Translations under genes and position numbers: made by a program
Source of the DNA: Dimorphilus gyrociliatus
Taxonomy: Eukaryota; Animalia; Annelida
Assembly (NCBI GenBank): GCA_904063045.1
Contig: CAJFCJ010000015.1
Span: 620,001-684,000, forward strand
Length of the DNA: 64,000 nt
Direction of reading: 5' to 3'
Shown here: positions 53,801 through 59,800 of the stretch, piece after piece
Layout: the number at the start of each line of letters is the position of its first letter
How positions within the stretch are numbered: position 1 is the first letter of the stretch
The notes under the pieces: model-generated
Seen by the model: only the letters and a program-made list of their open reading frames with translations
What the model was told of the DNA's origin: nothing
The model's database searches: none

Positions 53801-56800
53801 ATGGATAACTACGACCCAGGTTATATGGAAGAGGAGGAAGAATGGGATAGGGAGGGTCTTTTAGATCCTGCCTGGGAGAAGCAGCAGAGAAAGGTCAGCC
53901 TTCGTTACCGAATATTTTAAAAACTAAAAAATTGTAGAAAGAAAAAATGAAGAGTATAAGTCAAACATAAATACATTTCTATGATTTTTTACTTAAAAAC
54001 TGTACATATTCTAGCAAAAATATCAAATTTTGATCTTATTAGATTAATGATTACTTGTATTTTTTTAATACTACTTTTTATAGTCAGTCTTAGTAAGCCG
54101 GCGATGTAACACCTGTTTATTTTTCTTAAATAGAGAAATTAAATATAACGATGAGATCGTTATGGCCGAGTTAAACATTTTAAAATAAATGAACTTTCTA
54201 CTTCTATTATTCTTGTAAAGAATTTTTTTTCTGCTAGTTTAAATTCTTGTCCAGCTTTCATTCTGTGTCACCCCGCCTTATTCGTGTTTCAATTCTCATT
54301 GAATGATTACGCGTCCCTCTGAATCATTCAAGTGATTTGAATGGGGGAAATATAGGTAACTTTCGAGAAATTTTTAATATATGCCTTATATGATTACGTT
54401 TGAAAGGGGAATCGTATAAAAATTACTGTAGAATATTGATTAGTCATCATTTTTGACTAATAGAAGACAATTGATTTCTAACAAAAACGAGTGAAAGGAA
54501 GTTTATATGAAGGGGTAAAAAATGAGAGTGATATAGGAAAGCACAGGGAGCATTTGTATGCCATAGCCGTTTTATATATAGCAATGCAACTCTAGCCAGA
54601 TTTCTATTAGGCCTACTTTTGCCGGTAATATAAATATTGCCTATCATATTATGTACTATGGAAAGCTCGTTCATTCTGTTTGAACGTTTTATCTCTCGTT
54701 GGGATAATAAAGATAAGGGGACCGATATCTAATGTGCCATTTAATGGCTATATCCTTAAGCTCGTATATCTACTTATTTTTTTTTTAATGCTATTTTTAT
54801 TCAACTATTTTTTGTCGGTTCGAGAGTGGGTGAGGGAAAGAGAGAGAGAGAGAGCAAGCAAACAAGCAAGCAATATAGAGATGAAAAATAACTGAGGAAA
54901 AAAACTAGGCCTAAATCGATATACAATCAATTTAAATGTTTTTTTTATTTCACTCATACTAGAACATTAATCAAGGATTAGAATTATTAGGTCAAACCAA
55001 TTTTCTTTTTTTTTTTTTTTTGGCATATTAAGTCAATCGATGACTAATAGTTTTAAATTACATGAAATTCTATAGAAGAATGTATTTTTTTTTAAATATT
55101 TCTCTTTTTTTTTCTCGCTAAAAACTTAATTTACTTTCATTTGTTTTTATAATAGACTTTTACGGCATGGTGCAATTCCCATTTAAGAAAAGGAAATACT
55201 TCTATCGAAAATATTGAAGAAGACTTTCGTAATGGGCTAAAATTGATGCTTTTACTCGAGGTGATTCTTATTCGATAAAGGGGACCTCCTAAACTGTTTA
55301 ATATACATGATTAACTTGAAACAGGTTATCTCCGGTGAACAACTTCCGAAACCCGATCGCGGGAGAATGCGCTTCCATAAAATAGCTAATGTTAATAAAG
55401 CATTGACATTTATTGAAGCTAAAGGTGTAAAATTGGTAGGAATCGGTGCTGAAGGTTTGTTAAATTTTATTGTTTTTTAAATTATCTTTATAACCTAAAG
55501 AGAATTCGATATAACTAAGTAAATTGGCAATTCGTGTTCTGTCAATCAGAATTGCGAATACCATTGCGAATTGTTTAAGCCTAGAAGAAAGATAACAGAT
55601 AACTCACAAATTATTTCATTAATTCAACACTCTTACAATTAAAAATCTTATCTAAATAAACATTTTTTCTATTTTAATCAGAAATTGTTGATGGAAATTT
55701 AAAGATGACACTTGGTATGATTTGGACAATCATTTTGCGTTTTGCTATTCAAGACATATCTGTTGAAGGTAAAATTAAACTTTTAAAAAAAGAATTAACT
55801 TTTTTCATTACGTTCTATACTTTAATCTTAAGCTTTTTCTTTTCTAAACTTGATTGGTTATATAAAAAGTTGTATACAAAGATTTCACGCATGCATACAT
55901 ATGCCTGTTTTATCTTATATTTAGACTAATTATAGTCGAAAATTTGAGGGAAATGTGTATACATGTATCTATATTTACAATAATAGTTAATTCTGTATAT
56001 ATTGAATATCAATACGATATATACTGCAAACTAATTATTTATTTTGACATTAATTTAACGTTTTGCTGTTAATCTTCTCTTAATAATTTCCAAGTCGATA
56101 ACTGGTATAAATTGAGGACAACTTTTACTGCTTGTAACAAACTTTTCACTGTTGTATCTGGTAAGAAAAGCCCAGAGGGAAAAGTACCTTCGGTGATAAA
56201 TTATACAACCTAACAAATTTTTTTCTGAAGATATATATATATATATATATATAATATTATTTACAAACAACCTGTTTTATTTTTAACAGAGGTATTATTT
56301 AATTTTGCTATTGTATACATTATTTTCTTCGAGATATCCATTACAAATTGGAATTTATTATGATCCTTTTCCAATTGCTTTTCTCTTAATTTCTAGTTTT
56401 TTCTTTTCTGGCTGTCTATAATCTAGATCTCTGAACCAAAAAATAAAAATTATGTAAACTCTTACATTTTACGTATTCCAGAGAGTACTGCTAAGGAAGG
56501 TTTATTGCTATGGTGTCAAAGAAAAACTGCACCATATCGAAATGTGAACGTGCAAAATTTTCATAACAGGTAATTATTGTAAAAAGTTACTAATTGCGGG
56601 TTTTCTATTAAACGTACAGAAGCGACAGCTAAAGAGGGTTTACTCCTTTGGTGCCAACGTAAGACAGCACCATATCGAAACGTGAACGTGCAAAACTTTC
56701 ATCTCAGGTGACATACCTATGTCCCCGGCATGAATTTCCCGCCAAAAAATATATTTTTTTCCAGAACCTCTATGATATTGTATTTTTAGGCATGCAACCA

Positions 56801-59800
56801 TTGCAGTTCTTTTACCATTTTATCGCGCCTCTAATGCTGTATTATAAACGTAATTTATGTGCTTCTATTATTTAATAATTTCAGTTCGCATAGTGAGGAA
56901 AAACGGAGGCTGAATTAGTTTAACGCAATTTTTAACATCTATTTTTATACTAGAACTAGTATTTTATGTTGATCCTTTTTTTATACTGTTTAATTTAGAT
57001 TATACTTTAAAACCACGAGTACAATTTATTCTAACATCGTCTTTAACTAACAAAGCTTCAAGGATGGATTGGCATTCTGTGCATTAATTCACCGCCATCG
57101 ACCTGAGCTGCTTGGATATGAAAACTTACGACGGGTAGGAACAGCTCTGTATACAAATATTCACCGCTTTTCTTTTTCTTATTTGTCAGTTTTTGTTTAT
57201 TTGTCAGTGAGAAGACGTAATCAACCTTTGATTATATAGTAATTAATTAGATAGGTTGAAAACGTTAACGTTTAGACGTTGTAATATTCATTGTGAGTCT
57301 GGGGCAAATTTTTTTCTTTATTATTTTTTTGCAGTTTGAAACTCAAATTTACCTGATTTATCGTTTTTCTCTTGATCGCGCACCTCTGCTGAATTATTTT
57401 AAAACCTATTTTATTCTACCATTAAGCGATTATATACTGTGGATGTTTATCAAAACGATAGCTTAGAACCTATTTTTTTCATTTTATTTCACAGCTTTAA
57501 GGACGGTCTTGCTTTTTGCGCCCTGATTCATCGGCACAGACCCGATCTGCTTGATTATCATAAACTGTCTAAGGTAGAGAAGCTTTGAAAAAAATAACAT
57601 TTTCAACTGAAAATTTTTACCGATAATCTCTTTGTGCTTGTATCTAACAAAGCAGAATTGCTGTTTTAAACATTGATTTTATTATTTTTTCGTGTAGTTC
57701 CTAATCAATGGCTTGGTGAAAAAAAACTTATTCTGAATGGTTTTTTTTTGTTTGTTTATGTTGAATTTGTAGATTTTCTTTAGATAATAATCTAGTCTAA
57801 AGTTAGCTTTTGTAACTCTGCCATACATCCATTTCAAATTATAATTAGCTTTTTTTTAAATCAGGATAATCCTTTGGAAAATTTGAATCTCGCTTTTGAT
57901 GTTGCTGAAAAACACCTAGACATCCCGAAAATGTTGGATGCTGAGGATATGGTTAATTCAGTGAAACCGGATGAACGTTCCGTTATGGCTTATGTCTCAT
58001 CTTATTACCACGCTTTCTCTGGAGCTCAGAAAGCTGAGACTGCGGCTAATAGAATTTGCAAAGTGCTGAAAGTCAATCAAGAGAATGAACGTTTAATGGA
58101 AGAATACGAAAGATTGGCCTCTGATCTGTTAGAGTGGATTCGTCGTACCACTCCCTGGTTGGAAGATAGAACAACTGATAAAACTCTTCCAGGAACAAGA
58201 AGAAAATTGGAAGAATTTAGAGATTATCGAAGAAAGGAAAAACCCCCAAGATTGGAAGAAAAAGCTACCTTAGAGACAACTTTCAATACGCTGCAGACTC
58301 GTTTGAGATTATCAAATAGACCAGCTTATTTACCTACCGAAGGAAAGTTGGTTTCGGACATTACCAATGCATGGAAGGGCTTAGAACATGCTGAAAAGGG
58401 TTTTGAGGAATGGCTGCTTAATGAACTTCAAAGATTAGAAAGATTGGATCATCTAGCTAAGAAGTTTAGACATAAATGCCAAATACATGAAGAATGGGCT
58501 CAAGGAAAGGAGGACATGCTTCGCAATCCTGACTATCGCGGTGTTAGATTGACCGAACTAAAGGCTCTAAAAAAGAAGCATGAAGCGTTTGAAAGCGATC
58601 TAAGTGCCCACCAAGACAGAGTTGAACAGATAGCTGCTATTGCTCAAGAGCTCAATGCTTTAGACTATCATGATGTTGCAAATGTTAACACTCGATGTCA
58701 ACGAATTTGCAGTCAGTGGGATGTTCTAGGCGAACTGACCACTCAAAGAAGACATAATATTAATGATTTGGAAAAAGTACTAGAAGACATTGATCAATAT
58801 CATTTAGAATTTGCCAAGAGAGCGGCTCCATTTAACAACTGGATGGATGGTGCAAAGGAAGACTTGGTTGACATGTTTATTGTTCATACTGTAGACGAAG
58901 TTAAAGGTCTAATGGAAGCTCATGAGCAATTCAAGCAGACGTTGGGCGAAGCTGATAAAGAATATCATGGTATTGTTAGTCTTGTACAAGAAGTCCAACG
59001 ATTGGCCCAAACTCATAATTTGGGCTCAGGTGCTACGGAAAATCCTTACACTACCCTTAGTGCTCAGGTTAGAATATTTTTACAAAATTTTCAAAAATAT
59101 AGTGCATCTATGAGTAAGCTAGTTTTGCTTGAGGGATGTAAATACTTACACTTGGGACTTACTAAAAACTTATTAAGCTCCTTTATATCGCTTTATATAA
59201 GAATATTGCTTAACAAAGTTCCTAACTTATGCATATTTTTCTCCCCTTCACCCTCTTATCATTTGCTGCATGGGAACGTTCTTATTTACAGGAGGTTAGT
59301 TGGTACATTTGATTCTGTTATTCTAGACAAAGAAATTTTAATTCTGTCGCTTATTGTCTTTTTTGTGCTAGTGTATATTTCATAACAAATTCTATATCCC
59401 CGTCCATTTAAAACTATTTTTTATAACAATTTAAAAAAAAATAACTAACAATTGTCGCTTGTTCAGATGGAAAATTCGTGTGAGGTGAGAAATAAAAACC
59501 GCTTTTCTTTTTAAATGCATAGCTGGTATAATTCTTTATTCTACAAAGAAAAATAGAGGCTACTTTGATAAAGAAATTTTAATTTTTTTTAACTTAAATT
59601 TATAATAAAAAGCATGTTGATTTTTACGTTTCATGGATCATTGATTAAAAATGTTAACAATAATTAATTATGTTGAAATTGCTATTAGAATGTCTTTTTC
59701 TGAAGTAAGAAAATTCAAATTATTTACTTCTTGTTATTAATGACAAACAGGATATTTCCCAAAAATGGAGTGATGTTAAGCGGTTGGTTCCTCAACGTGA

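Follow-up and report, generated by a model that had tools for sequence, protein, structure and literature searches.

The alpha-actinin gene of the miniature annelid Dimorphilus gyrociliatus very probably contains two adjacent clusters of tandem-duplicated alternative exons in the part coding for its CH2 domain. All four copies appear to be in working order: copies A1 and B2 would form the default isoform, and copies A2 and B1 would be included under regulation. Alpha-actinin is the ancestral actin cross-linker, and to our knowledge invertebrates possess one alpha-actinin gene only, which serves all tissues. We analysed a window of 64,000 nucleotides of AT-rich animal DNA from this species (GenBank assembly GCA_904063045.1, contig CAJFCJ010000015.1, positions 620,001–684,000, forward strand). 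Within this window the gene occupies 53801–60715 (+) and has nine coding exons, with a coding sequence of 2,670 nt encoding 890 residues. Coordinates of individual features are collected in Table 1.

Two consecutive coding exons each occur twice in tandem, one pair with lengths of 88 and 88 nt (A1 and A2) and the other of 79 and 79 nt (B1 and B2). The first-pass annotation of this DNA had described this duplication, and its coordinates, lengths and intact splice sites proved exact: at all eight exon borders the expected AG or GT is present. Between A1 and A2, 19 of 88 nt are different but only two residues (S/A and N/L); B1 and B2 differ at 29 of 79 nt and at six residues. In a repeat search of the region, the similarity within each pair ended at the exon edges. 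We take 87, 88 and 79 nt to be the sizes of vertebrate ACTN exons 4, 5 and 6, and because the sizes fit, we regard the 88-nt and 79-nt pairs as duplicates of exon 5 and exon 6, respectively.

Both 88 and 79 are of the form 3n+1, therefore including both members of a pair shifts the reading frame. It had been claimed on this ground that the members must be exclusive, and a frame walk (the only step for which exons were joined, as homology searches were run per exon) bore this out. Joining A1 to A2 brings a stop at nucleotide 11 of A2, joining B1 to B2 brings one at nucleotide 4 of B2, and skipping either the A or the B position leads to a stop within 30 nt. Only one exon per pair is compatible with a protein, because double inclusion and skipping both hit a stop after 3–30 nt. 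All four A×B combinations remain open into the large exon that follows. The claim that four isoforms are possible thus holds as far as the frame is concerned, but only A1+B2 was found in annotation or transcripts. Each pair consists of adjacent homologues of equal length and equal phase that keep the frame only when one member is used, which is the pattern of a mutually exclusive exon cluster. A productive mRNA would take exactly one A and one B exon, and messages with double inclusion or skipping, which meet an immediate premature stop, would presumably be cleared by nonsense-mediated decay (NMD).

We compared the proportions of synonymous (pS) and nonsynonymous (pN) differences between the copies. 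In pair A, pS was 0.64 and pN 0.10; in pair B, pS was saturated (above 1) and pN was 0.17. Thus, pN lay well below pS in both pairs, and the divergence between copies is not neutral. When an equal number of changes was placed at random, none of 20,000 placements gave so few residue changes without a stop. Each copy was also compared with its orthologue in a related annelid, whose actinin gene is carried by a Logan genomic contig (L001, from SRR23372228). L001 keeps all four exons, with like order, lengths and splice sites, and it retains the diagnostic S/A and N/L differences; introns are 58–65% identical between the window and L001. The changes in A1 (4–5) and B2 (4) were all silent. In A2 there were 11 silent changes and no replacement, with splice sites kept, and in B1 there were 16 nucleotide changes, two of them replacements (pN/pS 0.10); for each of these two exons, none of 5,000 random placements matched the observed pattern. 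Taken copy by copy, pN/pS ranged from 0 to 0.10 (P ≤ 0.002 for each copy). Synonymous divergence in A2 (pS 0.57) and B1 (pS 0.64) was like the background of the gene (0.62 in the large exon), whereas it was lowered in A1 and B2 (pS 0.22–0.24). Neither A2 nor B1 has a stop or an indel, and every AG and GT is kept in L001. Judged by these substitution patterns, purifying selection maintains each of the four copies, in agreement with the earlier claim that both copies of each pair are under selection, and A2 and B1 evolve like ordinary coding exons rather than relics.

The available transcripts and proteins all use one combination. The annotated protein CAD5121858.1 uses A1+B2, as do the other two of the three members of its 90% cluster, which derive from Logan contigs of about 3 kb (L009 and L010). 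These contigs are spliced transcripts of one sister species and share 99.9% identity; L009 is 85–89% identical to the window and to L001. In each of them, exon 4 is spliced to A1, A1 to B2 and B2 to exon 7. The polypyrimidine tracts before A1 (15/20) and B2 (16/20) are richer than those before A2 (11/20) and B1 (11/20), and the acceptor of B1, aaag, is unusual and weak. The stronger tracts and the transcripts fit a default, abundant A1+B2 isoform, with A2 and B1 regulated. Selection on A2 and B1 argues that they are used. With their weaker acceptors and with conserved intronic elements in their flanks, among them two GCATG cores just downstream of A2, they would most likely be included under regulation in particular cells or stages.

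The binding site of actinin for phosphatidylinositol 4,5-bisphosphate (PIP2) has been mapped to residues 165–181 of ACTN2, in the loop between the first two CH2 helices, with Arg163, Arg169 and Arg192 forming a platform (PMC4259493). The first-pass annotation had equated the duplicated segment with the described PIP2-binding segment, and this agrees with the mapping, in that exon 5 would hold the 165–181 loop of ACTN2. All three platform arginines are retained across the four copies. Counting along the ACTN2 sequence as we know it, we take exon 5 to contain Arg163, Arg169 and the loop, and exon 6 to contain Arg192. On the same assumed numbering, the N/L difference of pair A falls at about residue 178, inside the mapped loop and toward its end, and the six differences of pair B fall at about residues 196–205, directly after Arg192. 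The swaps would spare the arginine platform while altering residues in or near the PIP2 loop and just after Arg192. Their likely effect is a fine-tuning of phosphoinositide regulation and/or of the open–closed balance of the actin-binding domain (ABD), rather than a loss of function.

It had also been proposed that B1 resembles non-muscle actinins and B2 the muscle or fly type. B1 does favour ACTN1, scoring 36.3 bits against it and 30.6 against ACTN2. However, B2 scored nearly equally across the human paralogues, and the PEL versus PDL distinction does not separate the two exon-6 copies in Capitella, Lingula, Watersipora or Priapulus. This leaves a weak case for assigning the two copies to muscle and non-muscle.

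We surveyed the actinin loci of Helobdella, Lottia, Priapulus, Capitella, Owenia and Watersipora at the DNA level, using the exon peptides of the window. In Helobdella, exon 5 and exon 6 are both single. Lottia, Priapulus and Capitella each have one exon 5 and two copies of exon 6, with splice sites present. In Owenia there are two exon-5 copies, both 88 nt long with AG/GT borders and separated by a 40-nt intron, and three exon-6 copies, the first of which has an in-frame stop. Watersipora has two exon-5 copies about 280 nt apart and two exon-6 copies. The double duplication was therefore found in full only in Owenia and Watersipora among the six loci, with the exon-6 pair alone in Capitella, Lottia and Priapulus. 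The rarity implied by the first-pass annotation was overstated, as the exon-6 pair is widespread and present in RefSeq models, and Watersipora has both swaps annotated.

Annotated isoforms of a single species differ exactly at the exon-6 segment in Octopus bimaculoides (X1/X2), Ostrea edulis, Ruditapes, Sinanodonta, Owenia and Watersipora. The same segment is swapped in Gigantopelta (X1 and X4 versus X2 and X3) and in Lingula (X1 and X3 versus X2 and X4), and Watersipora X3 additionally swaps the exon-5 segment. Insect proteins have one form of each of the two segments. B2 is 96% identical to the downstream copy of Lottia, and B1 takes the position of the R-ending upstream copy of Capitella, Owenia and Lottia. 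The final residue in annelids, Lottia and Lingula is R for the upstream or first-type exon-6 copy and K for its partner, a pattern that suggests a single old exon-6 duplication. On these comparisons pair B is an old lophotrochozoan feature, possibly with an older, protostome origin. Pair A is rarer, being found in Owenia, dinophilids and Watersipora, and it is unannotated in annelids. Owenia and the dinophilids both have an intervening intron of 40–51 nt, which points to a shared origin of the pair within annelids and its loss in Capitella and Helobdella; the signal in the 29 residues of exon 5 is insufficient to prove common descent. We consider it unlikely that the exon-6a/6b split (upstream 'PEL…R' type, downstream 'PDL…K' type), and perhaps the exon-5 split, came from the protostome or bilaterian ancestor, whose single actinin gene would have coded for both kinds of CH2, with vertebrates having parcelled the two kinds into ACTN1/4 (PEL) and ACTN2/3 (PDL) once their genome had duplicated. 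If that were true, the annelid gene would preserve the ancestral way to make muscle-type and non-muscle-type ABDs from a single gene.

Two of the loci and gene models seen in these comparisons had further peculiarities. In the Owenia fusiformis actinin locus (L007; 29897–30112, 34190–35925 and 38755–39504) the second exon-5 copy is unannotated, the 'DM.N..KPDE' neck exon is present in two copies, and the annotated isoforms also swap an EF-hand exon. The RefSeq model of alpha-actinin-like isoform X2 of Tubulanus polymorphus (P0121, 912 aa) contains the exon-5/6 segment twice, at residues 146 and 386; either the ABD is duplicated in tandem or two genes were merged in the model.

Exclusion in C. 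elegans is enforced by steric interference where the intron is shorter than about 40 nt, and exons of 3n+1 or 3n+2 nt lean partly on NMD (PMC4165533). The A1–A2 intron is 50 nt long (51 nt in L001) and 88% identical between the two genomes, compared with 58–65% for the other introns, and the branch-like A of its TACTAAT motif lies 24 nt from the A1 donor. D. gyrociliatus has a median intron of 66 bp and splicing adapted to short introns (PMC7854359). A neighbouring CK1/TTBK-like kinase gene needs a predicted 51-nt GT..AG intron with an in-frame stop, at approximately 61252–61302 of the window. Because of this kinase intron and the 66-bp median, steric exclusion from intron length alone cannot be claimed in this species; it would be more plausible for the 40-nt intron of Owenia. 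The B1–B2 intron, at 360 nt, is not too short for splicing in this sense. The frameshift-plus-NMD safeguard holds for both pairs.

The two GCATG cores lie +21 and +83 nt from the A2 donor. They have counterparts at +20 and +92 in L001 (positions 8894 and 8966), which are the only GCATG in its exon 4–7 interval. Both cores read GGCAUG, not UGCAUG. A GCATG downstream of an exon is the classic layout of an Rbfox-type enhancer for that upstream exon. A2 has conserved GCAUG in its proximal downstream intron and is in this respect a candidate Rbfox-regulated exon; the layout would predict its inclusion in muscle or neurons. A predicted hairpin downstream of B1 lies in a conserved block, its 13-bp stem kept and its loop diverged in L001, without covariation. 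The region's inverted repeats are AT-rich and no better than chance would give, and an Rfam search of 55600–58000 returned no family, only a chance sub-threshold match to a bacterial small RNA.

Several points weigh against two exclusive pairs with four working copies. No transcript or protein with A2 or B1 was found in any dinophilid among the assembled contigs and proteins searched; as a negative this carries little weight, since assembled sequences tend to represent the major isoform. Steric exclusion is not established for pair A in this species, in which the kinase gene needs a predicted 51-nt intron. A comparison of the window with L001 brought out no docking/selector pairing that is conserved, as a conserved 62-nt island has different best duplex partners in each; this is a comparison of two genomes, which weak pairings may escape. 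The functional effect of the residue swaps is deduced from the protein sequence and the published mapping.

It is possible, if doubtful, that the two pairs are coordinated, so that the gene makes two proteins and not four, a default A1+B2 and a regulated A2+B1. A2 and B1 are adjacent, both have weak acceptors and they share the sole intron with conserved GCATG cores; the low pS common to A1 and B2 also suggests two co-evolving sets. However, the RefSeq models of Watersipora include three of the four combinations (X1 with 5a+6a, X2 with 5a+6b and X3 with 5b+6a), and all four are in frame in Dimorphilus. That A2 and B1 are mainly 'poison' exons, whose inclusion beside A1 or B2 makes NMD targets and so lowers actinin, is very unlikely. 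The early stops on double inclusion are as expected of such exons, and the 50-nt A1–A2 intron may be spliceable in this species. Poison exons, however, need no conserved protein reading, whereas nearly every change in A2 and B1 is silent in the actinin frame and both exons read as actinin CH2 over their whole length; moreover, molluscs, a brachiopod and a bryozoan have translated isoforms with the homologous alternative copies. It is also very unlikely that A1+B2 is the only form the gene makes, A2 and B1 being relics of old duplications that are no longer used: annotation and assembled transcripts do show A1+B2 alone, and a third exon-6 copy in Owenia, with its in-frame stop, shows that copies do decay, but relics would hardly show the near absence of replacements described above, with introns about 60% identical, open frames, intact splice sites and no matching random placement, and with synonymous sites saturated from copy to copy a relic would have decayed long ago.

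Two clusters with four working copies can be set beside several known systems. The exon-6 isoforms of lophotrochozoans in RefSeq and ENA (Octopus bimaculoides, Gigantopelta aegis X1–X4, Ostrea edulis X1–X3, Lingula anatina X1–X4 and Owenia fusiformis CAH17914xx) are like pair B in their 79-nt length, phase and order. They are automatic annotations. The D. gyrociliatus annotation has only B2. B1 is also more diverged than the other upstream exon-6 copies, ending in …GYENLRR and having F, not W, at its first full residue. In the bryozoan Watersipora subatra (X1–X3), as here, one gene has an exon-5 swap (X3) and an exon-6 swap (X2) with tandem copies in the DNA. Its exon-5 copies are, however, far more widely spaced than the 40–51 nt seen in annelids, and its second exon-5 copy is far more diverged, whereas A1 and A2 differ at just two residues.

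The vertebrate ACTN pairs 8a/8b and 19a/19b are also tandem mutually exclusive exons in the same family, but they lie in the neck and the EF-hand, and they give tissue-specific actin-binding or calcium-binding variants (PMC4550062, PMC9741552). D. gyrociliatus has one version each of the neck (vertebrate exon 8) and of the EF-hand region, as the first-pass annotation had noted, and both lie within fused exons. In the fly, as here, a single invertebrate actinin gene is spliced alternatively in the ABD region, giving muscle and non-muscle isoforms (PMC2289344, PMC4550062). The fly differences are limited to the peptide between the ABD and the first repeat (the neck), unlike those in the CH2 core exons 5 and 6. 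The atn-1 exons 4a/4b of C. elegans are an experimentally validated mutually exclusive actinin pair (Kuroyanagi et al. 2014, PMC4165533); they are unequal (161 and 83 nt) and 225 nt apart, unlike the equal-length pairs described here.

Our literature search returned no description of CH2 exon-5 or exon-6 swapping; an earlier mention in Lek et al. 2010 (MBE) is possible. Splicing of invertebrate actinin was described in the searched literature only at the fly neck region and in worm atn-1. Here the choice would be made inside the CH2 core, on two exons carrying the phosphoinositide-binding platform. Within annelids the swap is shared by Owenia, on the deepest branch, and a miniature species, and its exon-6 part is conserved also in molluscs, a brachiopod, a bryozoan and a priapulid. 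We regard this as a well-supported, phylogenetically deep and mechanistically ordinary case. Its novelty is modest, because the exon-6 swap, and in Watersipora both swaps, already stand in RefSeq models. The gene offers a natural set of up to four ABDs differing at two and six defined residues, which suits tests of PIP2 regulation and actin affinity. It also allows one to ask if alternative exons answer the same need as duplicated genes.

Exon positions were set from splice-site reading and from a full-length relative used in exon-wise tblastn. CAD5121858.1 (DgyrCDS10324, Dimorphilus gyrociliatus, 890 aa) contains the nine exon translations without a mismatch and in the same order. When the whole assembly was searched in six frames, this proved to be the sole actinin locus in D. 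gyrociliatus, with runner-up matches of 42%, 34% and 28% identity. The identification of the gene as alpha-actinin, with the pairs within CH2, was upheld by Pfam, PDB and alignments with the CH2 domains of ACTN1–4. The large exon matched human ACTN2 and chicken actinin in PDB (E about 1e-183), and Pfam searches of the exons gave CH, Spectrin, EF-hand and Ca-insensitive EF-hand domains. Two N-terminal CH domains are present: exons 1–4 match actinin CH1 (in the full-length relative and in CAD5121858.1), exons 5 and 6 align with CH2 of ACTN1–4, and Pfam CH was found on the large exon. The spectrin rod (Pfam Spectrin, E=1e-40) has three stretches in the large exon and a fourth in exon 8. The C-terminal calmodulin-like domain is represented by PF13405 and PF00036 in exon 8 and by PF08726 in exon 9. 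Exon 4 shows five silent changes and no residue change against L001.

Table 1. Features of the alpha-actinin gene in the 64,000-nt window (positions counted from the first letter of the window).
Feature	Position	Strand	Evidence or remark
Exon A1, copy 1 of the exon-5 homologue, 88 nt, default copy	56482..56569	+	Annotation and transcripts L009/L010
A1–A2 mini-intron, 50 nt	56570..56619	.	Contains the donor of A1 and, for A2, a branch-like TACTAAT, the tract and the acceptor
Exon A2, copy 2 of the exon-5 homologue, 88 nt, alternative copy	56620..56707	+	Conservation with L001; none seen in transcripts
Exon B1, copy 1 of the exon-6 homologue, 79 nt, PEL...RR type, alternative	57056..57134	+	Conservation with L001; none seen in transcripts
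Exon B2, copy 2 of the exon-6 homologue, 79 nt, PDL...SK type, default	57495..57573	+	Annotation and L009/L010
Two GCATG cores, candidate Rbfox-type intronic enhancer	56728-56732 and 56790-56794	+	Conserved position in L001
Hairpin, about 80–130 nt downstream of B1	57214..57266	+	Predicted for the window and for L001, z = -3.2 and -3.8
Coding exon 1, ATG at 53801	53801..53893	+	Residues 1–31 of CAD5121858.1; GT at 53894
Coding exon 2, CH1 start	55156..55260	+	Exact in CAD5121858.1; AG/GT borders
Coding exon 3, CH1	55325..55454	+	Exact in CAD5121858.1; AG/GT borders
Coding exon 4, 87 nt, CH1 end, leaves 1 nt of a split codon	55682..55768	+	Exact in CAD5121858.1
Large fused exon (exon 7): CH2 end, neck, spectrin repeats 1–3	57865..59067	+	401 residues; exact in CAD5121858.1
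Coding exon 8: spectrin repeat 4 and first EF-hand pair, single copy	59751..60377	+	Pfam; exact in CAD5121858.1
Last coding exon: Ca-insensitive EF-hand, stop at 60713-60715	60455..60715	+	PF08726 E=3e-26; exact in CAD5121858.1
Candidate cassette exon, 66 nt, in frame, 22 residues in the CH1–CH2 linker	56095..56160	+	Unannotated; conserved with L001
Micro-exon GAG, 3 nt, one Glu at the exon 7/8 junction	59292..59294	+	cag|GAG|gttagt, conserved in L001
Candidate cassette exon, 18 nt, 6 residues, intron 7–8	59467..59484	+	AG/GT and open frame conserved in L001

Three further exons, two of them candidates, were found in the gene, and the D. gyrociliatus annotation misses at least two, and probably five, alternative exons of alpha-actinin. 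A 66-nt block is 92% conserved inside an intron that is about 62% identical, and L001 retains its AG and GT. In both species its one open frame is that which the neighbouring exons demand, and six of the seven nucleotide differences are silent (pN/pS 0.05, P = 0.002 versus L001). Its peptide had no detectable counterpart among the six other loci, and none was seen in transcripts. This conservation suggests that the block is probably a cassette exon. The block may derive from exon 2: its middle, TFTA-CN, resembles the beginning of that exon, with which L001 has 11 nt in common, in frame.

The GAG micro-exon is the sole difference between L010 and L009 at the exon 7/8 junction, which confirms it by transcripts of the sister species. 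A UGCAUG lies about 20 nt upstream of it (59267-59272). The peptide of the 18-nt candidate is MENSCE here and MEHSCE in L001. No copy of this candidate was seen in transcripts; annotated acidic cassettes occur at the same junction in Haliotis, Gigantopelta, Lingula and Owenia.

Upstream of the actinin gene, at 43792-53247 of the window, lies a very large mucin-4-like gene with NIDO, VWD, C8-3_MUC4 and EGF-like domains and long repetitive SEA-like stretches. The neighbours of the actinin gene in L001 are different, with a bromodomain gene upstream and BLTP1 downstream, so synteny is not kept.

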